Assembly (NCBI GenBank): GCA_964199315.1
Contig: OZ116699.1
Coordinates: 27,404,001-27,468,000 of the forward strand
From: Orbicella franksi
Taxonomy: Eukaryota
Reading direction: 5' to 3'
DNA length: 64,000 nt
Shown: positions 4,216 to 50,734 of the stretch, one piece after another
Position numbering within the stretch: the stretch's first letter is position 1
Layout: each line of letters opens with the position of its first letter
Notes under the pieces: generated by a model
What the model saw: only the letters and a program-made list of their open reading frames with translations
Told to the model about the DNA's origin: nothing
The model's database searches: none
Made by a program: the position numbers and the translations under genes

Positions 4216-6060
4216 AAATAACATACTGCAGTGGTTATTTTCAAATACTTTTGCTTTTGCAGATTTTATCTCGCTACCATAATCGCGCACGCATTTTTTT
4301 TATCCCAGTAGTTTATTTTCCTGGATTAAAGTTGCCTCATTTTCTTGTCAATTGGCTGTATCACCCAGTTGCCATCGTTACGTCATCTAACCCAAATAGC
4401 ATGAATGAAAACGGAAAATCTCTTGTCAAAAAAGAGAGACAACAAAACACTGATAAATGAAGGGTCCGGGCAAAGGACGGTGACGTCAAATGGTAGCCAA
4501 TGATATCCAAAACCATTTATTAGGTATTTTACCCTGAGACATTAGATCTTTCAAGTAATGCAGGATTAGTCTTAACTGAACATCACAACCCTCAAAAGAC
4601 GAAATTAACAATTGATAAACGCCTGCGTGTGGACGTGCGGAAAATGTCACTTTTTCTCGTGAAAAGACCCCGCACGTAGACAATTGTTATACTACATTTA
4701 TTCAATTAATGATGCCGGGATTAAATTTTTAAATTCTAAGAAATATGCAGAAAACGTATGTCTTCTTTATCAACCCTTCCTTTCACAGCAAGCGTACCAG
4801 GGTGAAGGTAATTCTTGAAACTTCCATATTAACATGCAAATTTGAATCGTTTTCGATGCGTGACATCTCCTCCTCCCGCACTGATTACCATTCTTCTTCT
4901 GTTTGAACATCTTTCAAACGATACAGATTGTCAATCTTTTCAGTCACTCTTACATTTCGGGGTGAATACTGACTTTGAGCGGTCAGAAAGCTACACGAGT
5001 ACATATGTAGAATAATTGTGGGTGGACGTAGCTTCCACTCTGATTAACTTTATCACGCTACATTACGGTACATGTTATCAACATATTGACTCAATTGGGA
5101 CCAGTCGACTGTATCAATCGCTAATCTGTCCATTGAAATTAACGAGTTGATGTGAATTACAAGCGAATGCAATGAAGGTTGGTGGAATTTAACTCTGTTT
5201 CCACATTAGTATTGTCATTCTCACTGTATCCTGCCGGAGTAGTTCAGAGGATGCTACATTGCAATCATGCAGTCTATTGATGGACTACTGACACATGTAC
5301 ATGTTGGTGTCACACATTTTCGACTGGCAAAGCATTTCTGGTGGTTTCTAAATCCCTTCAATTCTTTCAAAGATCCACTTGTGCCTTTGGAACTGCTCAA
5401 GGCTAATCAGTTCCATATCAACATCACTCGTTGTGAATGACGTAAAACTCATTGTTGTCATACATGTCTGTGTTATTTTAAAGATATTCGAGATGAAATG
5501 TTCGATGAACAAGCAGCAAATGGGTTTTATTTTTGTTGGCACATGCCTTTTTATAATATTATTGCTCAATCCCAGATGGTTAGCGGTAATTTCTACTTAT
5601 GGTCGCCTAGTTTCAAATTTAACCTCAGCCATGTGTGACTTGCGTGACTGTCTTTATGCAAACTGTTACCATAGTTACAGCAGGCGGAATCGTTTACTTT
5701 TTGTTTTGATGACCATAAACTTAAATTTCACAATTGAAAGTGAACTTAAACCTGAATTATGTCATTCAGTCATTTTCCTTTTCTACGATCGATTTAGCCG
5801 TACGATGATATCACTATTAAGCTCAGGGATAATGCAAGAAAAATTTAACAACGAGAAAAAAAATATTTTAGCTTATTTATCATTTACCTAACTTTGGAAT
5901 TTGGAGGACTTTTAGGCACAACGTCTCTGTGCCATGAAAACGGGCCTTCACAGAAAAGCGATATCAGATGTTTTGGTAATGGAAGTATAAAACTGTGGAA
6001 TTGTAGTAGTTGTGAAACAGACACACTGGCTTATCAGAGAGCCCTAAGCGGTAAAACTAC

Positions 6061-6413
6061 TAATCGTATCTATAACAAAATCCTCATCATGATTGGTTCT
6101 CTGCGCGCCTATTTGTCACGTAATCGGCGCGCGATCACGCGGGTGTCCAATTTGAACTTTTTGTTATTGGATACCTGTAATTGGATACCCATGTGATTCG
6201 CACGTCAATTACGCGCGCTTTAATGGCTTCCTTTGTAATGTTTCGTTCAGTTTTCAAAACTTAGGAAAAGCGCTGCATGCGTTTTCGCTCAAAAGAAGCT
6301 CTCATAAGACATTTTTAACTCCGAAATTTGTTATAGATTCGATTAATTACTGATTGGACCTCGTGTCGTACAATTCAGGTACAATTCGTTTTCATAATTT
6401 CAAATTACTCGCG

Positions 6414-6456
<43 letters not shown>
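6061..6456. mobile_element. Bipartite element (TIR-bounded body + terminal hairpin)
   Basis: IR taatcgtatctataacaaaat / aaatttgttatagattcgatta (ends 6345), then hairpin tgattggacc..gtacaattcagg...cctgaattgtac..ggtccaattac. Confidence 0.65.
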
Positions 6457-6462
<6 letters not shown>

Positions 6463-6669
6463 ACCGGCAGTGGCAGTTTGTGTTACCAATTGCTGTAAAA
6501 CATAAGCCTACCTTGGTAAATAAAGTAAAAAAGCAAAAGCACAAACAAACAAACAAACAAAAACACGCCCACACCAAAAACAGGGTCACGAGTTGTGCTG
6601 ACCTACATGTAGCATATGATAACGGAGTCCAAGGCTTCCAAGTAATTTTACCATGATTCTCTCTTGAAG

Positions 6670-9600
6670 GCTAATTTAAAACAGCAACGTAAGACAGCAC
6701 GAGTGTTCTTTAGTTCGCCATTTGGTGGACTGGAAGAGGAGAGAGAAGAATTAACGAAGAAATACTGGCCTCAGTTGGCTTCTATGTGTAAAAGAGCCGG
6801 ATACGAGTTTGTGCCTGTTGACATGAGATGGGGAATAACATCCGAGATGTCGTCTAATGCTGCTACAATCGAGATTTGCCTACGAGAAATGGATCGATCT
6901 GATATGATAGTGGGTTTCTTTGGACAGGTAAGATGGGCAAAATCGTATCGTTTATATAAGAGAAGAGATTGTAAAATATACTATTAAGAGTTAGTTTGTT
7001 ACTGTTGTTATCCACTGATAAAACACCGAATTAACAATGCACGGCTTGTACAGCCAGAAATACAAGAAGAAAGGTAGCCTGACGATTACAATTGACTAAA
7101 AACAATTGACCCCTGTTTTGATTGGCTCATTGCGTTGCATGCGGTTGTTGTCATTTTATGAATTGTGGTTACTTTGGCCTTGGATGTACGGCTACAGTAT
7201 TCGTTTTGTTGTTTAGAGATATGGTTGGCATGGATTGGACAACCTTTTACAGAAAAGCTTTGATGTCGCAGCTGTGAAATACCCTTGGGTTAACGACTAT
7301 CGTGAGAAAGCTGTAACTGAGTTAGAGTTCTTACAAGGCCATCTGAGAAACCCTGGAAAGAGAGCAGCTTGCTTCTTCTTTAGAGATAAGGTGAAAATAT
7401 ATCTATATTGGTATACTTCAAATCTGAAATTGTCCTTTCCATGAACTGTCGTTATTTGGTTTCGAGGAGTTGTTGGCGATGTCTTTCCAATCCAGACAAC
7501 CCAAATCAAAATGGACACACGTGCAGGAGTCGTACTAAACCTGATCATTAATATTATAGTCTTACGACGATATGAAATTGAAGTTAGCTGAAGAAGCTGA
7601 AGACGAAAGACAGGCACGGAAGTTCCGGTCATCAACCGATGGCCCTAAGGCTGCCAAGTACTTAGAGGACTTGAAACGAAGAGTCTACGAAACCAAAGAT
7701 AAAGTGAGTAATAAAACAAAGCTTTAATTTTTCTTCATGGTTTAATCAGTGAGAGGGGATAGCCAACCCACAAAGAGAAATAAAAGAAGAAATGGATCGG
7801 TCTGATATGATCAGCCTGATATTCTTCTTGATAAATATAACTGCGCCCATGGTTCCTTTTTCATAGTGTTTAGCTGTCCATATGAACTACAAAAATCCAC
7901 AAAAAGGGGCCCGATTAATGTACGAGGCAATAGAGAAGTATCTGCAAGAAGTAACGTTAGCTCGCCCTGTTCAGAAGTTGTCAGCTTTGGAGGAGGAGCG
8001 TGCCCACCATGATGCGTTTAGAGTCAGTAGGCTTGCCATGGGTGGCGTTTTTGTGGGCGGGGATGACTACTTAAGTCGACTTGACAACCACGTCAAGTCT
8101 CAAAGCACAGAGGAAAGTCCTAAACATCTGGTTGTAACTGGGGATGCTGGTAAGATAATGTAATGAATTTTTGCTTTTTTCGATTTACGTAACATTTTTC
8201 ATTGTCTTTGTAATGCTTGAACATCCGTACACAAGGGCCTCTAAGTTCCATCCGTGAAATGGCACAAAAGTTGAACAATCCACATATTACCTTTCAGGGT
8301 CTGGAAAATCATGTTTGCTAGGAAGCTGGTCCTTGCATCACCAAGAGAAATTTCCCAACGACGCTGTGGTGTATCACTTTGCGGGTAGTTCTAGTGATAG
8401 TACTGGTAAGCAATTCAGTTTTTTTTGTCGCCATTGACAAATTATTAAAGCCTGTTCATCTGCTAAACCAACAATAACTTCACCAATAACAACAACAAAA
8501 AAACATTCTGCATGAACTTCCTGATAATTCCAGACGAACATTTCATATTACTGTAATTAACAATTATTCCACCAGCCCACGCTGGATATGACATGGTAGA
8601 TAGTCAATGATGCTATAACCATCTCATATCCAGCAAGCGTGAGTGGAATAATTGTTTTATTAAAAACGCCCCAATGATATAGAAAACTAGCATAAAATAA
8701 AATAAGAACGCCTGAGAAATTACGCATACGCTAACCATATTCGTAGAGCATGGTATAATTCTTCATATATCAGGATGGCTAAGCCAATGAAAACTCGTAA
8801 TTTGCATCATCCAATGGTCTAGTTTTTAACATGATAGCTGTATTAGGATAAACGAACTGTTATTTTCATTCAATTCATTCTCGCATTCAACGCTTATGTC
8901 ATTATTTTTTGATGTCTATTTAACCAACGAATCGAAAATTGATCAACAATTGATCTCTTCTTAGTGCCGAGGAAGATATTAAAGCGTCTTCTGGAGGAAC
9001 TAAACGGTTGGTTCAAACAGAAGACACAGACTAACCAACAGGAACTCGGGGGGCAACCACAGTCAACAGAACCGGGTAATATTAATGAAGACGTTCTTGG
9101 TCTCATTCGAAACCTGTCAGAAATGGTGCAGAGGATCACCCGAGCCGGCTTTCGCAGTGTAATTATTATTGATGCTCTGAACAAAGTAGACGACACTGGA
9201 AAAACAGCGAAGGTAATATATATATTTATAAAAAAAAAAATGTTTGTGCGGTCTCCCATTCAAGGAATACAGAAACTACCAATACCGATGACATGGTGAT
9301 TTGCAAGCATGAAAAATATCTCAATTCCTATCGATTTTCTACAACCTAACAAGACAGAATGGCCGATAAGCACAATGATAATCCTAGTTAATACTAGAGT
9401 TATAATATCGTTTTGTTTTCTTCATCGTAGACCTTATATTGGTTGCCAAAGGTACTGCCTCCAAAAGCCCACCTTCTAGTGTCTGTAATTTCTACAGACG
9501 GTCCAAAGGTGACTGAATTGACTGAAGAGAGAGGCTACTCTGTTATTAACATGATGCCATTGAAGGAGAAGGAAAGAGAAGATATTGCATTGGTAAGATA

Positions 9601-12600
9601 ACCAATGCGTAATTGAAACCTCCTTCTTGTGTTCCTGTTGTTCACAGTCAAGTTAAACACGATCTCAATGCAACGAGCTTATTTAAGTACAGTGCAGACT
9701 ACTTTAAGCCCTTTTGTTTCCATTAATGATCAATCGTTGAAGAAGGAAAGAGAAGATTTTGCGTCGGTGAGATAACCAATGCGTAATCGAAACCTCTTTC
9801 TTATGTTCCTGCTGTTCATTATCAAGTTAAACACGACCTCAATGCAACAAGCTTATTCAAGTACAGACTACTTTAAGCCCTATTCCCATTAATGATCAAT
9901 CGTTAAATTCCTTTCAATTAAAGACATTGTCAAAAAAAATAAAAAGAAGAACGGTCATTAACGAGAGAATCTGGATTTAGTATATCACCGCCTGGCCTCT
10001 CGTTACTTACATTAAAATAAGCTGATAGAAATAAGTATAGAGACTGTAGAAAGGTTAAGTAGATAAACCTGAAATGGAAGAAAAAAATTATGTATTCCCT
10101 ATCTCGGTTCTTGTTTCAAACAGGCAACGCTGAAAGTCCGTGGAAAAGCCTTATCAACAGAGCAAAAAGCGAAAGTTGTGGGCAAGACGCAAACGGGAAA
10201 TCCTCTCTATCTTAAAATATTACTGGAGGTAAGTGCTTTGTTCGCAACGTCATCTATATTTTTGGTTGTTAGAACGTAGTCAGTAATTAGGTCATTTGAC
10301 TGTTGATACCTACGATGTACGGAAACGAATGAATATGTGCTTGTGACGTATGGAGAGGATTGAATACAAATGATGATAGAAACGAACGAATTATTAAAAG
10401 GGTGGATGACGAACCATTGCCAATACCACGGTTCTCCTCAGGAACATAATTATGTCATTTCTCCCCAACAAAACTGGTACATTTAAACCGGTTAATTAAA
10501 AGAGACTTACGTATACAAGTACACATATTAGTTATTTCTCACTGACGTATTTGGTATAATTTTCCTTTTGTTCAGGAATTATGCAGCTTTGGAGAGTTCT
10601 TTCAACTTGATGCCTATCTTGATGGACTTCTTGAGACGAACGAGTATACGATGTCATTGTTTATGCCATCCATGTTACATTTTTTGCACTTGCTGTTACA
10701 TTTTTTCATACTCTTTCCTAATACACTATACGCTTTTTCTCTAAGTCTGTTTTCTTTTGTTGTAGCACTAAAGAGCTTTTTCTTAAATTTCTTCAACGTT
10801 TGGAAGCGGATTATATCCCTAGAGAATTTGAAGGAAATTTGATTAAAGATGTGAGTACAACTGAGTTTCCCGTCCGTTAAATACGAATGACTAAGAACTC
10901 TGCCTGAATGTATAAACATAAACAGTAAATTCGATCTAAAAAGTTGATTGTTATTATTATTTTCAGGTCATGTGTTGCATTTTGGTGGCTCGACAAGGAA
11001 TGTCTGAGAAAGAACTGAAGTCGATTCTTCATATAACCGACCAAATGTGGTCTGTTCTCTACTTCGCAGTAGAAGAGTTCATTTTGGAGCGGACTGGGCT
11101 TTACGGGTAAAGATTAGTTTATAAGGAGTGTTTTGGCCTTATTAGTTGTACTGACAATTTCCAAGTTTTTTTCCTCTTTGTTAACTGTGAAGAATGACAG
11201 GAACTCGAAATTGGCCTATTTCATGTGAACATGGAGAAGCCTACATAGAAAAAAAAAATTAGTTCATCATATTGACATCTTGCTTTCAGGTTTTCACATG
11301 ACGAATTATCTGCCGCGGTAAAAGAACAATACTGCCAGGACGAGGCAACTATCAGGCATTATATCATGTTAGAGGTGGAATATTTTGAAGCGTGATTGAA
11401 GGTTAGAATTAGCATGTTTGCTTATGACGGGTCAAACGAGATCAAAACAAAACTTTTTTTAAATAACTAAATCAGTAGATAAAGTGTTTTTCAAATAACG
11501 TGTAGATTAACTAGTGGAGTTAGCCGACGAGTAATTAGCAAACTTTTGAAATAATATCGACTATTATTGTTATTAAAAGTTTCTTTGAAATGGTAGCTGT
11601 TAAAATAACAGATCAGACATTGTTTCTTTGCAACTACTTCTGAGTTTTTGGCGATGAACATTGTGGGTTGTATTTTGCGCTGCTTTTGCTCAATTCATGA
11701 CTGACTGTCAACCCAAATAAGAACCCTGTCATAGCCTTGCCAGCTATTGCCTGTTATTTTCGTCTTTCATAAAAGGAGAGAGATTTGGTTTACGACACTA
11801 ACATTCCAAAGCGCGTCTGCATGGAACTGCCGTGGCTTCTGGCAAAATCTGGAGACATAGATCGACTTGTTAAGTGTCTCACGACTGCTTCAATCTTCTG
11901 GTCACTCTACAGGTTTGCATAATCTTTTACATATAAGTTTGTTGTGCAAGGTACATTGCATCCTTAATTATGTTCATCCCATCCCACAAAGATCACTTTA
12001 GGATCAGTAACTTTAAAGAAGTATGCACAATATTACGAAAATATATTTTCACGAACATTATTTAAGACGTTTCCACTGAGTTGACAATATATATTACAAA
12101 TAAGGACACAGTGCAGACATTTCATATTTCTGATCAAATGAAAATGCGCTTCACAGTTTTTGTTTTATTTAATAAGTCTTACATTTGCTGTTCTTCAATT
12201 TCAGTGATGAGAACAAGTATGACTTAGTAAACTACTGGAACGCAACTGGGTTAACAGGGGAAGAAATAACTGCTTTGTATCAAAAGACAGTTGATGATCA
12301 GCTGACAATACTCTATATCAGAGAACGAGAGAAAGGAGGAGAAACTATCAATGCTGTCAAAAAGGTAAACTGGACAGTTTGTGAGTCATACATTTCCTGT
12401 TCTGTTCCATCCGTTGTTTAAATAACCGTCCTTTTTCCTTTTGTGGTGAAATGTTTCTAATATAACTTTGTACTTGAATGATCGAGAAGAATAGGCAGCT
12501 GGGTTAGTTTCAGTGAGAGAAGCTCAAGGCTGGACAATGCTTTTTCCTAGTGTTACGATTATCAGTTTTATTTATAGTTTCAAGAGCTTTAACTTTGATT

Positions 12601-39891: not shown

Positions 39892-42435
39892 TTTCCAGAC
39901 GAAAATTAGTCTGCTTTGCTCGAGTAGTACTTATGATGATCCACGCCTGATCAGATGTCCCAATGACTTGTTTTCAAGAGAATTACTATTAGGTTTGTAT
40001 ATTTCATCCTTGGACCAACTTGGACTCATCCGTTTTGACATCTGCTTTGACGGGACCCTTTTAGCTCTCTACCTATTAGAGAAATTATGGCTTTTTGTGT
40101 GTTGTAATGCGACCTCTGAGTTTACTTACATAACAAATAAACGTCCATTAAAGGAAACAGGTTAGATTTGTTTCCTGATTACAAGGCGTCAGAGGCATAT
40201 TTTTGCCTTTCAACTTCAGCAGGGATTCAACTTTGAAGAACCTAGTGCTGAAATCTCAAGTTGGATCGTATTAAGAAACCCTTGGAGATGTCAGATCGTA
40301 TCATTTTAATAGCTATTTAAAAAGCTGAGTCGGGATTGTTGATAAACAAAGAACATATGGGGCGCCAAATTTCACAAATGTGGATTAGCATTGTGAATAT
40401 TTGATTGTCAAGATGAAAAAGAAAACATGAATGAAATTCAATTTGGCAAGGTCCTATCTCGGTGACCCCATAAAGCCATACAACCATCTTAGACCGTATT
40501 GTCCACCCTTTTGGAGTCAAAACGCTGTATTCAATAATTGTCACGTAGCACTGTCAATCTCAAAAAGAAAGGACAGCGATTCAGCATTACCATCATAAAG
40601 AAAGGATCCAAACTAATTAATTTATTAGTAATTACGAAACTTAATACCACCACTTCTTCTGAATGACGCACATCAAAGACATCAAGACACTTTGATGCCC
40701 GGAAACGTTCAGTTTTATAATTTGACAAAAGGTTTTCAGTGGTACGTCTGGCATGCCAACCAACACGTATTAAAATGAAGCTTACCAAATTGACATGATC
40801 CACTGGAATAGCTTGTTTCAAACAATGACTCATGACGTAGACTGATGGAAGTTGAATAAAGTACCAGGAGCACGTGCAAGGTATGCATATCGTGAAACTC
40901 ATTCTAAACCAGCGAAATCACAAGGAAGCAAAAGAGAACCATCACTCTGAGCTGACATGGATTTATTGTCAAAACAAGTCTGTTTCTTGAATCATTATAT
41001 TTGTTTTCAGTTCATTGGTAACGAGTTTACTGCATTTATAATAGCCATCTGTAAGCGTAATACTGGCAAAATACCCATAAAGGTTGCATTATGGGTCAGA
41101 TTAAACAGAGAGGAACTCGAAATACTGATTCATGGCTCGTTTCTATCGCTTCCGACGTACTGCTTTGGGTGAATAAGGCGGTTACCATCACAGGCTAATT
41201 GGTTGACATATTGTAGTAAGAAACTACAAGTACTAATTGCAATTGGTAATCAACTAATGAGTCATTGCGTAACCGACTGAGCAAATTTCCGTTACATAAT
41301 TACCAAGAAAAAAAATAATCTAAAACAATCAGACTCTAATCTTTCAAACTCCGCCGTATAAAGTGGCTTTGAAAATTAACACAAAAGGGGAAAACAAGAA
41401 CGTTCCAGTTTGAGGAAACTATCTGTACGTAAACCAATTTGCCGTCATTGCTAATTAAGAGCGAAAAAGGCAGATGATTTAAAAGAAGGTATCAAACAGC
41501 TTACAAGAGGCAGAGCAAAGAAAACTATCACTAAAAGTTCCCTTTAATAAAGGATTTGATAACAACAGCCCTAGCTTATAGATCTAGTCGTTAATACACA
41601 ACTTCCCAGTAGAAACAGCCAGACTTCTCGCTGGGAAGGTAGCGTCTAAAATAACATTTAACGACCCAGTTTACCAATTACAAAGTGCTTGTTTGTAACT
41701 TATGACATAGTCTACACACGCACGCAGGTCCCCGGGACGCAGGTCAGCACTAAATAGATATAAACATTAAAATGGTACAGAGCATAAATTATCAAATTCC
41801 TCAGAAGGAAAGCGAGACACACGTGGCCGGCCACACCTATCTCGTACTATGCGAGAACCTCTGCTATTTCATAAATATTTTTTTCACGTCGTTAAGTAGT
41901 ACTGTACATGTGTTCTGCTGGATATCCATACATATTAATTAACCATGCCACCTTTTCTGGATTCTTATATATATATACTGTACAAATAAATTATATAGAT
42001 ATATCTAAAAGGTTCCCACAAATATCATTATACTAAGTTATTAAATATACGTGTATTCTTTCTCTGTAAAAACTCTCAAATAAATTTATCAACTAAAATA
42101 AAGACAATTTTAGGCTAACGAATGTTGTACGTAACTAGTTCTTTTAGTATCGTCAAACTATTGTGGATCATAAAAATACTAAAAATCCGGATCACATATC
42201 ACTATCGATTTCAACGGCTGGAGCAAGATAAAATTAAATAAAAAGAGGGGGACGGGGAAGGGGAGAAACGTTTCATCTAAGGTCCTTTTCAGCATTTGCA
42301 TTAGGATAAGCAATTCGCCAAAGAACTCGCGTGATGACTACGCTAGTGTTTAATACTTACGTTATTTTATAAAGATAAATTAGCTACAGTGCTGTCTGTA
42401 CCGAATACATGTATGTATACTATGTGTGACCATTT

Positions 42436-45062
42436 TCAAACGGTTTCTTCCTCCTCCCTCTCTTCCGCAACTTCATTGACGCGTTGATCCATCTTTAGGC
42501 GCCATCGCAGATGAGAGGGTAACGCTCGTTTGCCCAGATGGTTGCCTAAATTTGCCACCTCTCTTTCAAACTCTGCCAGTAACAGAACAGGGTCGTTAAT
42601 TTGTGAATGGTGAGTGACTAGGCCAACGTGAATCTGCCCGCCATGATTTGTGATCGAGATTGACAAACCACTTTCTGTTTTTCTAGGCGTCCAGCAGGTC
42701 ATCATTTTCGCCATTTTTCCATTGAGAAACACTGGCATGTTTGGTCCTGGTATTTGGGTCACTGTACATGATACCTTGTTTATCAGATAGTTGATCAATC
42801 GTCTCACCATAGGCAAAGGGAATAGCAACAGGCAAAGCTTCATGAAACCGTAGATGATAATGCTTTCCAGGGTAAAGGAAAACTTGTCTATTCTACGCCT
42901 CGTTTCCCACAGTCGAGGCACAGCACCTTGAGAGATATAAACGTTAAAATGTCTGGTAAGCTAAGTAAATCTACAGCAGTCGGCCCGATTGCGCTACTCA
43001 TAGTTCGTAAGTAACGCGACTTATTCATACGTTAGACACAAAAGTGGCCCTGCTGTCGACACTAGTACTACCTCCGCATGGATGGAATGCTACTTCATCC
43101 CTAGCACATCGCAGGCCCACAGTGTAATTGCCGCGATTCCCTAACAGATCGCTGTTACCTGGATGGAAAAGGAGCGCAAAGTACAATACGGACAACACGA
43201 GAAGACTATAAAATATTTGGCGCTAAAGGTGAACCTATAACTCATGGATCTGGAGTCTGTTAGCCCAAAACCTTAGAGAAATTAATAACAATGGGGATTA
43301 GTGCCACCTTAACTTATCTAAAAGGAGACCACCAAAACAAGGGGTGCCCAACACGGTACATGTAGGTCATGTGGGTTGGATACTTAATCAGATTGCTGCT
43401 TTTGTTGTTGATCTTTCAAAGTAAATGTATGTGATTTTTTGCTGTATCCAATGACTGAGAACACGTTGGCTTTTTTCTTGCCCAGAGAGGAGTAACATTG
43501 ATACCCAGGATGACTAAACACCAGCTTACATGTTTTAGAAAATCATGATTACTTCAGTGTATTATTGACATTTGTTGTGAATCACTTTGATTTTGGTTTT
43601 CAGACAGTCATTGAAAGCCACTCAATTGCAACCGATTCACTTCTCTTTAATCACTTCCTTAGGTGCTTCATGAACAGTATGAATCAATTGTTCAAACAAT
43701 CTAACTTATCTGCTGAAGTTCTCAGCAGCTGGAAATGTCCATAAAATTTCATTTATGAAAGAAAAACAAGAAATTCTTGATAAAAAAAATTATTTTTGCA
43801 TTATTAGTTTGAGTAGTTTATTCCTATTAATTTGTGAGAGGTTACTCAGACGAGTTATAGAACATTCCCTGCGGTATCATATTATAAGCAGAAAATGCTG
43901 CCAAAGGTTGAGGTGCATGCAAAAAGCTATGGAGGTTTACCATTTGTACGCATTGCGGGCCTAAAGCATGGTATATTAAGAATGTGAAAAAATTTCCATT
44001 GCCAACCATATTGCCAGCACATTGGTGATCAGTCTAGCAGCTTAATTTAATGGACAACCAATCCAGGGGCTGATCCAGGATTTTCCTTAGGAGGGGGTGG
44101 CATAACTGACTGGAGAGGTAAACAAATATTAAAAGCAAATATGAAGAAGGCTTCATCTCAGAGGGGGCGGAGGTGCACCCCCTGCACCCTCCCCCCAGAT
44201 CTACCCCTGATATCTGAACACACTCCTTCATGGCACTGGGTTTAAAATATCAGTTAGGGGATCAATTTACCTGGCTTCAACTAAAACTTGTTTTAACCCA
44301 GTACAATGATCAACATAGGAAAGAGGTTTGACATAACCACTGTACCTTCTGTTCCTACTGGAAGTTTGATAAATGCAAGAGAAAATTTGTTGTCCAGCTG
44401 GAGTTTGGTGTGTTGAGGTCTGACATCCGTCCTAATACAGACCAGAATGTCATCAGGGTATTGCACTCTACATCTCTGAAGAAATGAACGGATTGCACCA
44501 GCCACACAGGAAAGGAGAATGATGTCCACTGAAACCAGAAAAAGAAATTTTTTTTATCTTAATTTAAGTTTCATATTTGAATTTTTTACTTAAATAACAG
44601 TTTTCAGCAAATTATATCTCTTGGACACAATTCTTTGAATTAATATTTATGTACATTAAATAAATTTAAAGTAAAATGTGTTTAAAACCTAGAAAAGATG
44701 ATGCATAAAGTACATTAACATTTGCATAACAAATATATCAGATTAAGGCTATGGTATAGTGTCATCTAGATTTATAGTGTTTGGTTGCTGTGGTAAAAAC
44801 AGTGGTATTGTCTTGTCTTAACGGTAATGGCTTTGCTTTCTAATATTTTAATGTGTCTCATATCTTAGTTTTTAACATTATTGTAGCATATTTGAGAATC
44901 TTTCTACATTATTAATTTTTAATACGTTATCTTTTTACTCTGTAATATTTATATGAGGGCCACTGGTTTTTCAGTAATTTACTATTCTGTGTTACCCTCG
45001 TTAAATAAAGTCGATTATTTTTATTATTATTATTATTATTATTGTTGTTGTTGTTGTTTTTG

Positions 45063-45096
<34 letters not shown>

Positions 45097-47929
45097 CAAA
45101 AACTTGAAAACACATTTAAATAAATTTCCAAAACTGCTCAGTCTCCTAGTCAAAATATAAGGTCTACTGAGTAATTGTTGTTAGTTCATTCTGAATTTGT
45201 TCCTATATCAAGCAAATCACCTAATCATACAACATGTTCACAAGAGGTCATGATGAAATCTTTAAGTTGTAGTGAAAAGGCCCTATACAAGCAAGAATCT
45301 TAACCACAATCTTGCATAATACAGTATCCTGTTTCAGTCCCATAAAATAAACAGCTGTACATGAATTCAGTCAGTATGTTATCCTTGTGTAAGTTGCTTA
45401 GATGCAAAAGTAATAATTTGAATTTTACTCTGGTTGACAACATCCATGTACATGTAAATGTAAACTTTACTTGTAAAGTATAGTTAACCACAAGAGCTTA
45501 TTATTACTGTCCATCGATATGTCTCAGGTACAGAGATGCTATTCTGTTACTGTGTAAGTGCATTACGAACATTCCAAGGAACTTGATACCATAAACAATG
45601 GACACTACTAGCTATGTTGTCTCGGTATCCTTATCAACAATTAAGGCTCATGTCAATGGTATTAATCCCATCCATTACTATTGTTTGCTCATCTTAGGTT
45701 ATCAGTTTTACTATCTGTTGCATATCCGGTCTCAACAAATAGTACTCACGAACATGTTATGCTACACCAGTCTTTGTACCAGCAGCATGCTAGGCACATC
45801 AGCTATTTTTCCTTGGCTAGTATACAGTGTTTCCTTTCCCTCCTCTACCCTCTCCATAAATAAACTTGGACAACTGGCCTGGGTGCACACCTTCCACTTA
45901 GCTATTGCCCACGTCAGGCTGGGTGGGCCCCTTACCCCACCTTATTCTTAGCTACCTAAGCAGCTAGGTTGGGGGGCTTCATTCTCTGGGTGAGTGCGCT
46001 ATCACCCCAATTCATTCAGTGGGTGTGTCCGCCAACCGCCCAAGTTTCTGCTTTGGGGTTCGTGTCTGCTAACCACCCCACATTGTGTTTATGCTTTGGG
46101 GTTTGAGTTCGCTAACTGCCCCACTTTGTTTGCAGGGTGTGTCCGCTAACCATCCAATTACCTGTCCAGGGTGTGTCGCTACCACCTACTCTCGTTGCTA
46201 TCCCAGGGAGCACCCAGTGTCCATGGTCCCATTTACTGCCAGATTCGTCTTGTTTTTTTCTTTGTTCATACAATATTATTAGAGAGCGAGTTGAACGCAT
46301 TACCCGCGGGTAATCTGCCAGAAATTACGGTACATATGATTAAAATCTGAAATCTGATGTGCATATAGTTAGCTTGAGGAATGTGGCTGAAAATGGCTAT
46401 TTTCAAACAGCTGTCCATGACTGCAATTGTTCTGTAGGCTCACAAATTATTAAGAATAAAAAGCAGCGATATTAAAGAATGACGTTTCGACGGCTCCATG
46501 CCATCATTCTCAAATTCAAATACGATATCTTATTTGAATTTGAGAATGATGGCATGGAGCCGTCGAAACATCATTCTTTAATATCGCTGCTTTTTATTCT
46601 TAACTGGCTTGCAAATTTGTTTATTTATTTTTTTTGATAGCTACAGAGTTAATAACTCTACCATTGGCACCTTTGTGCCCATTCTATGGCTGTTAGCTTA
46701 CCCTTACACTTTACACAACACAAAATTGCCTTTAATATTATGTAGAACTTGTTTAAAATAGTAGTTTCTCTACCATAAGTTGCTTATCATTGTACCAGTG
46801 GCAATGTAGCTGATGAATTTGTTTATTCTCATTACCTGTCTGCTTCACAGTAAACTGAGAAAGTAGATGTTGATTAATTCGTGAGATTAAAAGTATAGAA
46901 ACAAATATTTCACAGATGTAAATTACCTTTAGTGCGAGTAATATCCTTGATCCTCTTGACAGACTTAAAATCTATGGGACCAGACCACGAGACATGAAAA
47001 GAATCGTTTATAGATGTACTTCCCTCGCTTTGATTGGCCACAAAGAAATCATCTTGACTTTTCATGAGGAGTCTTTTGAGAATGACAAGTGGTCCAGTGA
47101 AGCAAGCACAGAAATATGTCGCTAATCGTCCCAAGAGAAAACAATGCCTCTTGAGATACACGGTCTTATAATCAAGAGAGTCTAACACAATTCTCATTAA
47201 AGGAAATATATCCGCAATGCTCTCATGTATTTGAAACAATACTCCAGTATCATTGCTGTCATTGAATTTCGGAAACAGAGTCACTCTCCACATCTTCTCA
47301 AGATCCTTGAAGTTCGATAGTTCAGTGATTTCTCTCCAATTCTCAAGGTTCGCAGACGAATTCTCTTTACTTTCAAGAACATAATTACCTATGTTTAGAT
47401 TGTCAAATTCCTTCCATCCATACCCGCTTAGTACCCTCACGGGAGACTGTCTAAATTTTAGCAATCGCAAATTTCCATGCAAGATTCCTTGCTGTAGTAA
47501 TTTGTCTCTGACAAAATTTTGAACTTCGTCGATGGTGACCATTCCCTCAAAAAGAAAGAATAAATTGTTCACTGGCGCTGTATTTACACAACTCGTCTGT
47601 AGCCACACTGCCTCTGATGTGGACATTTTGCTCAGCTTGCCATCTCGATGACGCCGAATACTGCAATAAAGAATAAGTTTCCTGACGAAAAAACACACAG
47701 GAACAACGAGAATCACGGCACAGAGAAACAACGCGAAAAGAGTAACGTTAATAATGAAGACAGTTAAAGATATGAAGAATCTTGCCAAGAAAACAGTTTC
47801 GGTGGGGTGCGTGAGCCGTTTGCTCTTCCCGTGAGATTTGTTTTGAGCCAGTGTTTCTTGTGGGGATGTCTGGTTCAAACGATGAATGCTTCTTGGAGAT
47901 GCCCAGCATTTGTCGGTTGTAGAACACAT
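42436..47929 (-). CDS. Wax ester synthase/diacylglycerol acyltransferase (WS/DGAT)-fold protein with N-terminal TM helix; catalytic motif degenerate
   Basis: Exons 47929-46927, 44528-44346, 42926-42436 (phase 1,1; 1677 nt = 558 aa + stop). Family-like segments: MSTSEAVWLQ; WRVTLFP; LFQIHESIADI at the HHxxxDG position; KVDIILLSCVAGAIRSFL; DNKFSLAFIKLPV; C-terminal TVTQIPGPNMPVFLNGK and GLSISITNHGGQIHVGL. Hydrophobic stretch FFISLTVFIINVTLFALFLCAVILVVPVCFFV near the N-terminus. Confidence 0.87.
44064..44209. mobile_element. Short MITE with CAGGGG termini
   Basis: caggggctgatcc / gatctacccctg; no clear TSD. Confidence 0.55.
45014..45096. repeat. Compound (TAT)n/(TGT)n microsatellite
   Basis: Directly visible trinucleotide runs. 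Confidence 0.95.
46450..46603. repeat. Near-perfect palindrome (73-bp arms, 8-nt loop, one mismatch)
   Basis: ttaagaataaaaagcagcgatattaaagaatgacgtttcgacggctccatgccatcattctcaaattcaaata-cgatatct-reverse complement. Confidence 0.92.
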
Positions 47930-50734
47930 AGTCTCTATGCCATAAACACGTGAACCTGTAGTTGACCAGGCCAATTTTTCACGCGAGTAAACCGCTCATC
48001 TCCCGTTGTCTCGTGTTCGTAAATTGCCATAAGCGTAATTCTTCCGTTCCAAGCCATGGTCATTTTGGGTAATGTTCGATCAAACAATACCAGCAATCGT
48101 CAAATGAAAGGTCACATTGTCATTTCTTACTCGAGGCCGTTGTTCCTTTGTCGAATCGTCGATTCAAACGCTCATATTCTCGATTTATATTACGTTCCGT
48201 TTCTCGGGAAACGACGCCATGTTTGTTTACCTTCAGACCACTTACAACGACATTTGTGATTGGTTAAGAAACTATTACGTGGATTTTCATTGGCTTGTAC
48301 TATTTATCAAACAGCCGGCGCGAAAATAATTTGAAGTCGGCTAGTGAAACAACATTGACATCATCGGATCAGAATATTCTAAATTTATTCAGTGTGGAAC
48401 GTGTCAAGTTGATGTGACATTAGGTGTCCCAAATTTTTAACAATGCTTGCTTTTTATTGCTTTACACCTGCCTAATGATTGTTTTTTTCCGCGAGAACGA
48501 TTATTCATACATATTAAAAATCTGAAAATAGACGGATTGAAAAGAACTCACGACTGCTCCAGGCCCGGCCGAAGGAAGACCGGTAATTCTGTGAAGTGAG
48601 TGAAATCGAAAAACAAAATATATATGTTACACTAGATGAAAACCAAATGCAAAACGTTTTCCAGTGTCAGTGCGTGAAAGTTTCTGTTCTCCCTTTCAAA
48701 ATTTAAAATTAAGATAGGAGCATTTGTAACACTTAGCATAATAATTGAACAGGTTCACACACAGCTTGCTATTTTTGACTGAATTGCTTTTCATTTTTTT
48801 TTCTTTTCCTAATTCTTTTTACGCAAAGTACATCAGTTCAGTTACTTTAACACTCAACTATTGCGTGGTTCAACCAGGCTGCCATTCTCCAGCCTCGCAG
48901 TATGAAAATTAAACAATGAAGGAAATTCCTTGTTTACTTTTTTTTGAAATACAAATATTATCTTTGAATACGTACATTATTGATTAGAAACATTGCGTCA
49001 AGAACCGATGTCAAAAAGGTTTGTCCGTATCTGCACCGCTGCATGGCTAAAAGCTTGATTAAGTTTTCATGTCTTATCTTTTTCATTATTATTTTTTTCG
49101 CTCAGGCTAAGAAAAAACAGACTGAATATAAACTTATATAAGTTTAGGAGGCAAATAAAAAAATATTGCGATTTACTGGTCTAGATAAGCACTGCGGTAG
49201 ATAACACTGTTGTTTTCCCACGCACGCAATAGCTTGGGAAATCCGCCGGTGTTTTTGCCGGGTCTAAATCCATGATAGCTAAAATGATTGATGCCGACAT
49301 TAAAACAGTGACTTTTAAGGAACAATAGCCTTCAAAAAGTATGACAGGCTTAAGTGCAACTGGTCATCCATTTAGTGGTAATAACTTTCAGCCTTGATCC
49401 GGTTCTTAATTGCTTTCTTTGTGGAAGAAACATTAAGCCAACTCGTTAAAGAATCCGACCGAACAAAACATTTCTTCATCGTCCTTTAACATGGTGTTGC
49501 GATTTAATGTAGTGAAAATACATTAAGGAAGTACTGACAAAATTGAATTTATCCGCATGGCCCATTGACCAACAGGAGCATCAGTGACATAAGTGTTTGG
49601 GCTCTACAAAATGCCTAAATAGTCCTGGCAATTACATTAGACCAATACGGAAAGATCTACCAATGAAAAAAAAAAAACTCTTCTTTGTACGCCGTTTAAT
49701 AGCAACAAATACTTTTTTTTTTACTGAGGTCTAGGTTATTTTACTACTGTCATTTTTATATTCAGTGAAATCTGACAAAAAGTTGCGGATATCTTTGTAA
49801 CTGATCGACTACTGATAAGACAGGAGCTCATCACGTGCCATTGTCATTCCTTTTTTTAAATGAGGTTTTCGGCTAACATTTTGTAGAAAAAAGACTGCTA
49901 ATAGTCAGTATAGACTCTAGCTGATCAGTAGTGATGTTAAACCCGAATCATCATCTCCAAGTTCTTCATGTTTCATACTAACCGGAACGATTTTTTTTTT
50001 CATGAATCCGAGTCAGTAGGCGGGCCCTGTACATGTTAGTTTATGTAATTATCTTGTCGTCCCGTCACGTTGGACCATTTGCACGCAGAATAGTTTTGCC
50101 ATCCTCAGGGTTTTATTCAACAAACTGAACGAGATGGCGCGACGGTGATTGTAAAACATAAAGGGTGGATTGTGTACAATTTGTTGAAGTGACGGCTACA
50201 GACCTTGCTTAATAGGATGGCAAAACAAAGTGATTAAAATGCAGTCATATCTTGCTGGGAATTGTGGTTTATTTAATAATTTATATTCTCGAAAATCCTA
50301 CCTTGTCCCTCTTTTATCACCCAAAGGAGATTAGCTCGTATTATGGGAGATGGTCACAATAGCTGTTTTTTTTTTTTTTTTTTTCGTAATCAAACTACTC
50401 AAGAGGTCATTTTCAAAGTAACAAATGCTGGGATGTCCTAGCTCGACTTGACAGCAGCTATAAACTACCAAAGTCGTGAACAATTATTGAGTTGGAATGA
50501 AAGCAATCTCGCCCAAGCAGTGAATATTTGTTATCGTATGGGGTACGACCAGATTTGCGTCCCCCGGCTTCTAGCCATCCGATTAGCTGATTGGGTTTCA
50601 TCCTCTCTTGTCAGAGATGAATTTTCGACTGCTGTAAGCAATACGACTTTGATTCAATTGAAAAAAAAGAAAACACAATTTCTTTGCATGAATGTGCATG
50701 TAATGACCACTATATCCTATCTTCATCCATCTCT

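Follow-up and report, generated by a model that had tools for sequence, protein, structure and literature searches.

A stony-coral WS/DGAT homologue with glutamate at the position of the second catalytic histidine, and a candidate animal branch of the family without this histidine

We analysed a window of 64,000 nucleotides (nt) from the stony coral Orbicella franksi (contig OZ116699.1, positions 27,404,001 to 27,468,000), whose minus strand encodes a 558-amino-acid (aa) homologue of the wax ester synthases/diacylglycerol acyltransferases (WS/DGAT). In this protein, the second histidine of the HHxxxDG motif is replaced by glutamate (Glu236) and the glycine by isoleucine, giving HESIADI. The gene is intact, expressed and under purifying selection. 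Its product appears best placed in a previously undescribed animal sub-branch of the family, in which the second histidine seems to be dispensable. Corals and many marine invertebrates store energy mainly as wax esters and triacylglycerols. Both histidines are reportedly essential in AtfA, according to the title of a 2009 article by Stoveken and co-workers (reference 14 of PMC10549239).

All coordinates given here are positions within the window, and the gene lies on the minus strand. The motif is encoded at 47207-47227 (cat gag agc att gcg gat ata; aa 235-241) in an open frame spanning 46910..47974. Joining of three exons yields a coding sequence of 1677 nt (558 codons); both introns have GT-AG borders and are in phase 1. 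The exons and the elements discussed below are as follows:

46927..47929, minus strand: exon 1, codons 1-334 and base 1 of codon 335; contains the motif in the N-lobe, preceded by a conserved tail and the hydrophobic anchor
44346..44528, minus strand: exon 2, bases 2 and 3 of codon 335 through base 1 of codon 396
42436..42926, minus strand: exon 3, codons 396-558 and stop; most of the C-lobe, WS_DGAT_C domain
47207..47227, minus strand: HESIADI, in place of HHxxxDG; retains the first His and the Asp, with Glu for the second His and Ile for Gly
47654..47800, minus strand: hydrophobic segment of about 49 residues (aa 44-92), predicted membrane anchor (hairpin or two helices)
47288..47293, minus strand: Met213-Trp214, remnant of the PLW motif; Trp in all 130 aligned rows, Pro absent in the hexacoral clade
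46934..46936, minus strand: Arg332, marker of the whole non-canonical animal clade
42877..42879, minus strand: Ser412, in a column that is Lys in all canonical members
42742..42759, minus strand: TQIPGP (aa 452-457), counterpart of canonical SNVPGP, with Asn replaced by Gln
42643..42645, minus strand: His490, without exception in the hexacoral clade; the column is Tyr in 63/76 canonical and 44/47 bilaterian proteins

Exon 1 starts at an ATG, orthologues begin at the same MCST, and a GTAATT donor follows at 46926. Exon 2 opens with V-D-I where canonical members have V-N-D, that is, the ND motif is lost (N336D, D337I). Exon 1 is carried by 14 RNA runs; in total, the 20 carrying runs come from 12 studies. 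Four runs were aligned to 42400-48000. In two studies, one transcript contig each (1981 and 2233 nt) spans both splice junctions (44528|46927 and 42924(+2)|44344), which are also present in raw reads from two further runs. Among the RNA contigs and reads of the four runs, no base differs within the motif, the nearest differences being at 47037 and 47294. Sequence, three-exon model and RNA junctions agree, and the HESIADI motif within a spliced 558-aa frame, first proposed in a sequence-only reading of this DNA, is thereby substantiated.

The N-terminal hydrophobic segment gives Kyte-Doolittle values above 1.6 in a 19-residue window for all starts from aa 44 through aa 74. A low-confidence full-length model draws aa 44-94 as a single long helix. 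A similar hydrophobic N-terminus is present in the canonical paralogues described below. The presumably cytosolic tail in front of it (aa 1-33, 47830-47929), together with aa 38-42, is unusually conserved among hexacorals: the tail opens with M-C-S-T-x-D-x-C-W, and R38-L39-x-H41-P42 is invariant in this group. R38 and L39 are also the most frequent residues at their columns in the bilaterian relatives. We recognised no known motif in this conserved tail.

By homology and fold, the gene product is a true WS/DGAT homologue. Exon 3 alone matches the Pfam model WS_DGAT_C (PF06974) with an E-value of 5.5e-19 (69 bits, cut-off 20.7), and a full-length orthologue (P0001, 96% identical) does so with 81 bits. 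For the N-terminal half, neither PF03007 nor any other Pfam model was matched up to an E-value of 10, whether exon 1, a shorter N-lobe piece, P0001 or P0026 was searched; two canonical paralogues, on contigs 7 and 4, score 55 and 37 bits with PF03007. Because the N-terminal half matches no Pfam model, WS/DGAT homology cannot be derived from Pfam alone. A check against the family models therefore bears out the assignment for the C-terminal exon, but not for the N-terminal half. The homology of the N-lobe was established by BLASTP against the paralogues and by the predicted fold. A first structure prediction, based on an alignment of 8 sequences, was unusable with a predicted local distance difference test (pLDDT) score of 34. 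In contrast, prediction of aa 95-535 from 118 aligned sequences reached a pLDDT of 90 and a predicted template modelling score of 0.91. The solved structure closest to this model is the Marinobacter (aquaeolei) WS/DGAT (6CHJ; Z 31.0, root-mean-square deviation 3.3, 343 residues aligned), followed by AbWSD1, the AtfA of Acinetobacter baylyi (7NXG; Z 29.6); the condensation domains of non-ribosomal peptide synthetases (NRPS) come next in the structural ranking with Z values of about 23. Foldseek matched the model to solved WS/DGAT structures with an E-value of 3.6e-19. Heterocyclisation domains, the dehydrating domains AzeD and AmbE, and maize GL2 complexes were further structural matches. The top matches among reviewed proteins were all plant WSD (Arabidopsis WSD1-11) and mycobacterial Tgs proteins.

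Three independent alignments confirm that Glu236 occupies the position of the second His of HHxxxDG. In BLASTP comparisons with two canonical paralogues, P0001 is 27% identical to one (430 residues, E 9e-48) and 25% identical to the other (482 residues, E 2e-43), with IHESIADIFPL placed over VHHSVADGVAL in a gap-free neighbourhood. A hidden Markov model alignment of the coral-orthologue profile with AbWSD1 (7NXG) sets HESIAD on HHAMVD. In an alignment of 130 sequences, Glu236 stands in the second-His column, which is His in 76/76 canonical members; the Gly column is Gly in the same 76/76 and Ile in the window gene. The motif also has its canonical position in the structural model, following a strand (model residues 134-141) and preceding a helix (147-157), in blocks with pLDDT values of 95-96. 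As to a true motif displaced to another site, the sole other HH in the protein is part of THHSQIND (aa 500-507), which is wrongly spaced, belongs to the C-lobe and varies among orthologues (TRH, TKH, GQD); it was rejected. The proposal of a WS/DGAT homologue with its second His replaced is thus upheld by the alignments, the fold and the C-terminal domain match alike.

The replacement is not private. H-E-[S/C]-x-[A/G]-D-[I/V/M] is found in more than 40 stony-coral sequences, including those of Stylophora, Pocillopora, Oculina, Desmophyllum and Acropora, and every orthologue recovered from a stony coral has HE. The corals with HE span the split between robust and complex corals, which dates back at least 245 million years (PMC5730576). 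Pairwise Nei-Gojobori estimates for six full coding sequences (the window gene and five spliced transcript contigs) gave ratios of nonsynonymous to synonymous substitution rates (dN/dS) of 0.08-0.21 for the whole gene, 0.08-0.26 for the N-lobe and 0.05-0.11 for the C-lobe. In the motif, the codons vary synonymously (CAT/CAC, GAG/GAA, AGC/AGT, GCG/GCA/GCC/GCT, GAT/GAC) while the residues stay constant, and the surrounding stretch DTGVLFQxHESIADxFP is among the best conserved of the protein. Compared with the canonical paralogue, the window gene is less similar to its counterparts in Nematostella (42% versus 60% identity) and Acropora (62% versus 69%), which suggests that it evolves somewhat faster.

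These data exclude a sequencing error or private allele, since the same codons recur in transcripts from several studies and HE is shared across stony corals. They also exclude a decaying pseudogene, given dN/dS values well below 1, synonymous variation of the motif codons and a spliced full-length transcript. The view that the protein is maintained has thus held up.

The change is no novelty of corals. A profile search of 1.84 billion representatives returned 2122 relatives, and the motif was examined in the 150 best of these. The closest non-coral relatives among them have HP, HQ, HL, HA, HM, HS or HR as the first two motif residues, not HH. A tree of 130 rows, calculated by a quick search with the motif columns excluded and rooted at the midpoint, divides with a support of 98 (SH-aLRT, Shimodaira-Hasegawa-like approximate likelihood ratio test) into two sides of 54 and 76 rows. 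The 76-row side, termed canonical here, has the second His throughout; in 68 members it follows another His, in eight it follows S, N, R or G. The 54-row, non-canonical side comprises all 51 proteins with His followed by another residue, two millipede proteins with HH..DA and one with SS. The first His shows the mirror image of the second, being present in 53/54 non-canonical versus 68/76 canonical members. A coral-specific loss is ruled out by the profile search and this tree.

Within the non-canonical clade, the coral genes and Nematostella XP_001622638 (HRSLADV) group together with a support of 100, as sister to 47 bilaterian proteins, of which 44 carry P, Q, L, A, M or S in place of the second His. 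The clade spans sea anemones, echinoderms, hemichordates, molluscs, arthropods and rotifers, with H only rarely at the second motif position; its bilaterian members include proteins of Ptychodera, Patiria, Limulus, Tachypleus, Rhipicephalus, Macrobrachium, Orchesella, Laodelphax, Neocloeon, Haliotis, Argopecten and a bdelloid rotifer, and are annotated merely as "putative diacylglycerol O-acyltransferase" or "uncharacterized". Four residues away from the motif mark the clade as a whole: R332 (54/54 versus 1/76 canonical), G396 (47/54 versus 4/76), P399 (52/54 versus 0/76) and W402 (52/54 versus 1/76). They are present in 7/7 hexacoral and in 40-47 of the 47 bilaterian members, versus 0-4 of 76 canonical ones. 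Judged from this distribution, the second His seems dispensable across the animal clade, and HE..DI would be the stony-coral state rather than the origin of the loss. A single base change can turn a His codon into one for P, Q, L or R, which fits repeated departures from His but is no proof of them; the root was not inferred, so that one early loss and many parallel losses are both compatible with the tree.

Several members of the clade deviate from this pattern. One protein of 749 aa (P0068) has neither His (SSCIMDG), whereas the two millipede proteins (P0066 and P0170; HHCFSDA, HHCLSDA) and an Exaiptasia protein (P0205; HHSVCDI) keep HH and lack the Gly. Many bilaterian members are 850-1350 aa long (P0053, P0058, P0065, P0070, P0107, P0130), with several hundred residues preceding the acyltransferase fold. 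Every reviewed WS/DGAT entry that we matched is of plant or mycobacterial origin, and in the open-access literature we found no relevant paper on animal, cnidarian or copepod proteins of the WS/DGAT type.

In the direct orthologue group, which among named matches occurs only in hexacorals, all 19 stony-coral rows have E at the second motif position. Nematostella has R there and Exaiptasia H, further sequences of the anemone clade have P, and two unplaced lineages have A and H. The residue after the motif Asp is I, V, M or H throughout the group, never Gly. Fixation of HE..DI across orthologues was thus borne out for HE in the Scleractinia, but not in the sea anemones, which have HR, HP or HH. 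A relative with HASMADH (P0041, on a contig from ENA) has a long first exon (6001-7134) and, about 3 kb downstream on the same strand, a WS_DGAT_C exon (10292-10642); compared with the window gene, this suggests that the exon layout is alike across the orthologue group.

Beyond the motif, the hexacoral proteins have been remodelled extensively, as seen in a column comparison of 76 canonical, 47 bilaterian and seven full-length hexacoral members. Universally kept are W172, W214 (from the PLW motif), H235, D240, W315, P391 and P432, mostly residues of structural types. In contrast, the following residues are conserved in the canonical and bilaterian clades and replaced in all or nearly all seven hexacoral members (canonical counts in brackets): R233 by Q (71/76), G241 by I, V or M (76/76), N336 by D (74/76), D337 by I (73/76), P367 by R (73/76), K412 by S (76/76), the Asn of NVPGP by Q (74/76) and Y490 by H (63/76), while D501 (69/76) is variable in hexacorals and His in the window gene. 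N336D, D337I, K412S, Y490H and the Asn to Gln change in NVPGP are each seen in 7/7. The sequence-only reading had placed the damage in the motif. Its second His and Gly are indeed gone, but the losses reach wider and include the ND pair, Lys412, Tyr490, Arg233 and Pro367. The hexacoral clade has also gained invariants and small insertions of its own (E211, Y254-K255-T256, D329, Q373-H374, N458, R477, H490, S533-H534). Its stem branch is long (0.79), whereas evolution within stony corals is slow.

Set against the bacterial WS/DGATs 7NXG and 6CHJ, the coral protein shares the two-lobe fold of the chloramphenicol-acetyltransferase/condensation type, the PF06974 domain, the motif at a strand-loop-helix, the first His, the Asp and the Trp of PLW. 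It differs by an identity of only about 15%, by other residues in place of the second His and the Gly of the motif, the ND pair, Lys412, Tyr490 and the NVPGP Asn, by an N-lobe below the PF03007 threshold, and by the addition of an N-terminal membrane anchor and a conserved tail. The bilaterian relatives (e.g. Ptychodera flava XP_070580235 and Patiria miniata XP_038048978) form its sister clade and share R332, G396, P399, W402 and the replaced second His, but mostly retain DG, ND, Lys and Tyr and are longer (550-1350 aa).

The genome additionally encodes three canonical paralogues: an intronless gene for 549 aa with HHSVADG (L001; contig 7, 15032538-15035957), an intronless gene for 552 aa with SHSLADG (L002; contig 4, 3497509-3500934) and a multi-exon gene with HHALGDG (contig 12). 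The first two, which score best of the canonical paralogues, match both PF03007 and PF06974. The canonical paralogues resemble the window gene in length and in the N-terminal hydrophobic segment, with 25-27% identity over 430-480 residues. Unlike it, they keep the second His, DG, ND and NVPGP, match PF03007 and fall into the canonical half of the tree, and two of them are intronless where the window gene has two introns. Activity is known from WS/DGATs with S or D at the first motif position, such as TrWSD4/5 of Thraustochytrium, and the second His is described as strictly conserved (PMC5513132); activity of the SHSLADG paralogue would fit this report. Beyond cnidarians, the next named matches of the contig 7 protein include WS/DGATs of Acidobacteriota/Holophagaceae (33-36% identity) and a krill protein. 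This may reflect old transfer, retroposition or simple conservation.

What the remodelled protein does may be approached from its lost residues. We give about even chances to a non-catalytic protein that binds lipid or acyl-CoA and carries out no canonical acyl transfer. We favour this because about eight residues are lost, the second motif position is not fixed among orthologues, and the literature offers precedents. According to this proposal, the second His, as the general base, would have ceased to be required in an old animal-wide branch, and most other family-invariant polar residues would have been replaced as well in the hexacoral sub-branch, so that canonical transfer from acyl-CoA to alcohol or diacylglycerol was given up. 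The conserved fold with its hydrophobic tunnel may have been put to use in binding an acyl chain or acyl-CoA at the endoplasmic reticulum (ER), another membrane or the lipid-droplet surface, where the hydrophobic segment of aa 44-92 would hold the protein. Without catalysing a reaction itself, it might serve neutral-lipid metabolism there as a cofactor, adaptor or sensor, with catalysis possibly left to the three canonical paralogues.

Two known systems illustrate how such a protein could work. The X-domains of NRPS for glycopeptide antibiotics (HRxxxDE or HRxxxDD) share the superfamily fold, and their second His and Gly are likewise replaced (compare HRSLADV of the Nematostella orthologue). 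They are reportedly inactive, as their channel is blocked, and act through partner enzymes, P450s, which they recruit (PMC6565677). In contrast to the coral protein, X-domains are bacterial and reside inside megasynthases, and the relationship between the two is only distant. The CER2-LIKE proteins of plants are ER-bound members of an acyltransferase fold in which the His is dispensable or absent, and serve as cofactors of the condensing enzyme in wax metabolism (PMC5489795). As members of the plant-specific BAHD family, they are related to the coral protein at the level of the fold only, with maize GL2 among its structural matches. Both likenesses would point to a possible way of working, not to family membership.

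Several observations weigh against a non-catalytic protein. Strong conservation of the motif segment and fixation of Glu across the robust/complex split fit a working site at least equally well. Glutamate can serve as a general base. The invariant polar residues of the clade itself (E211, D336, H374, H490, H534) could form a new catalytic set. Moreover, DG, ND, Lys and Tyr persist in the bilaterian sister group, so that those proteins at least may still be enzymes without the second His. We consider it a real, if less than even, possibility that the coral protein is an enzyme with a rebuilt active site, in which Glu236, His235 or one of the new polar residues (D336, H374, H490) acts as the base. 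The reaction could then be acyl transfer to another acceptor, or a related one such as thioester hydrolysis or dehydration. The synonymous change in the Glu codon, the strong selection on both lobes and the near-universal first His of the non-canonical clade, set against its less strict conservation in canonical members, agree with such an enzyme. The fold itself supports altered chemistry, as the heterocyclisation domains, AzeD and AmbE demonstrate. On the other hand, the direct orthologues vary between E, R, P, A and H at the second motif position and so have no catalytic residue in common, and seven other residues conserved in active members are replaced too. A takeover by His235 also seems unlikely, as neighbouring residues at a strand end normally face opposite ways.

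That the protein dimerises with a canonical WS/DGAT paralogue as a regulatory or scaffolding partner, in line with the regulator of an active paralogue suggested by the sequence-only reading, is, in our estimate, improbable. The genome offers three candidate partners with the same type of N-terminal anchor, and inactive members of the fold do act through protein partners (PMC6565677, PMC5489795). However, the HHSVADG paralogue is found in octocorals as well, while the orthologue group is hexacoral-only among named matches, so the two are not strictly coupled. A complex prediction for the catalytic region with this paralogue gave a score of 0.00; no controls were run, and the result is evidence neither for nor against binding. 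An artefact (sequencing error, private allele, pseudogene or misalignment) is scarcely credible in view of the transcripts from several studies, the many HE sequences, the low dN/dS values and three agreeing alignments.

The introns of the window gene show some peculiarities. In the regions 46140-46700 and 44083-44269, the depth of RNA contigs is far above that of the exons (up to about 130 versus 49); many of these contigs have loose ends, and some continue into unrelated sequence. They resemble transcripts of repeats or transposons located elsewhere in the genome and are probably not part of the gene. Intron 1 contains an AAT/ATT-rich low-complexity tract (44927-45153) that gives rise to poly-Asn, poly-Tyr and poly-Ile frames, and 45009-45105 was treated as repeats and skipped in read mapping.

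On a wider scale, we tentatively propose a so far unrecognised animal branch of the WS/DGAT family that extends from cnidarians to deuterostomes and may have lost the catalytic His early in animal evolution while remaining under selection. If so, the branch would represent either a new catalytic solution for this fold or a group of lipid-binding regulators of wax ester and triacylglycerol storage, with the hexacoral protein as its most remodelled member, in which the conserved polar residues surrounding the former active site are for the most part new. For these animal proteins, the database name "putative diacylglycerol O-acyltransferase" is no evidence of activity. The natural variants SSCIMDG, HHCFSDA, HHCLSDA and HHSVCDI are useful for judging the importance of the second His within the clade, and orthologues in the laboratory anemones Nematostella (XP_001622638) and Exaiptasia make the function testable there. 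The three canonical-looking paralogues and the remodelled gene are concrete candidates for wax-ester synthesis in corals, and together they provide a natural test of the need of this fold for its second His.

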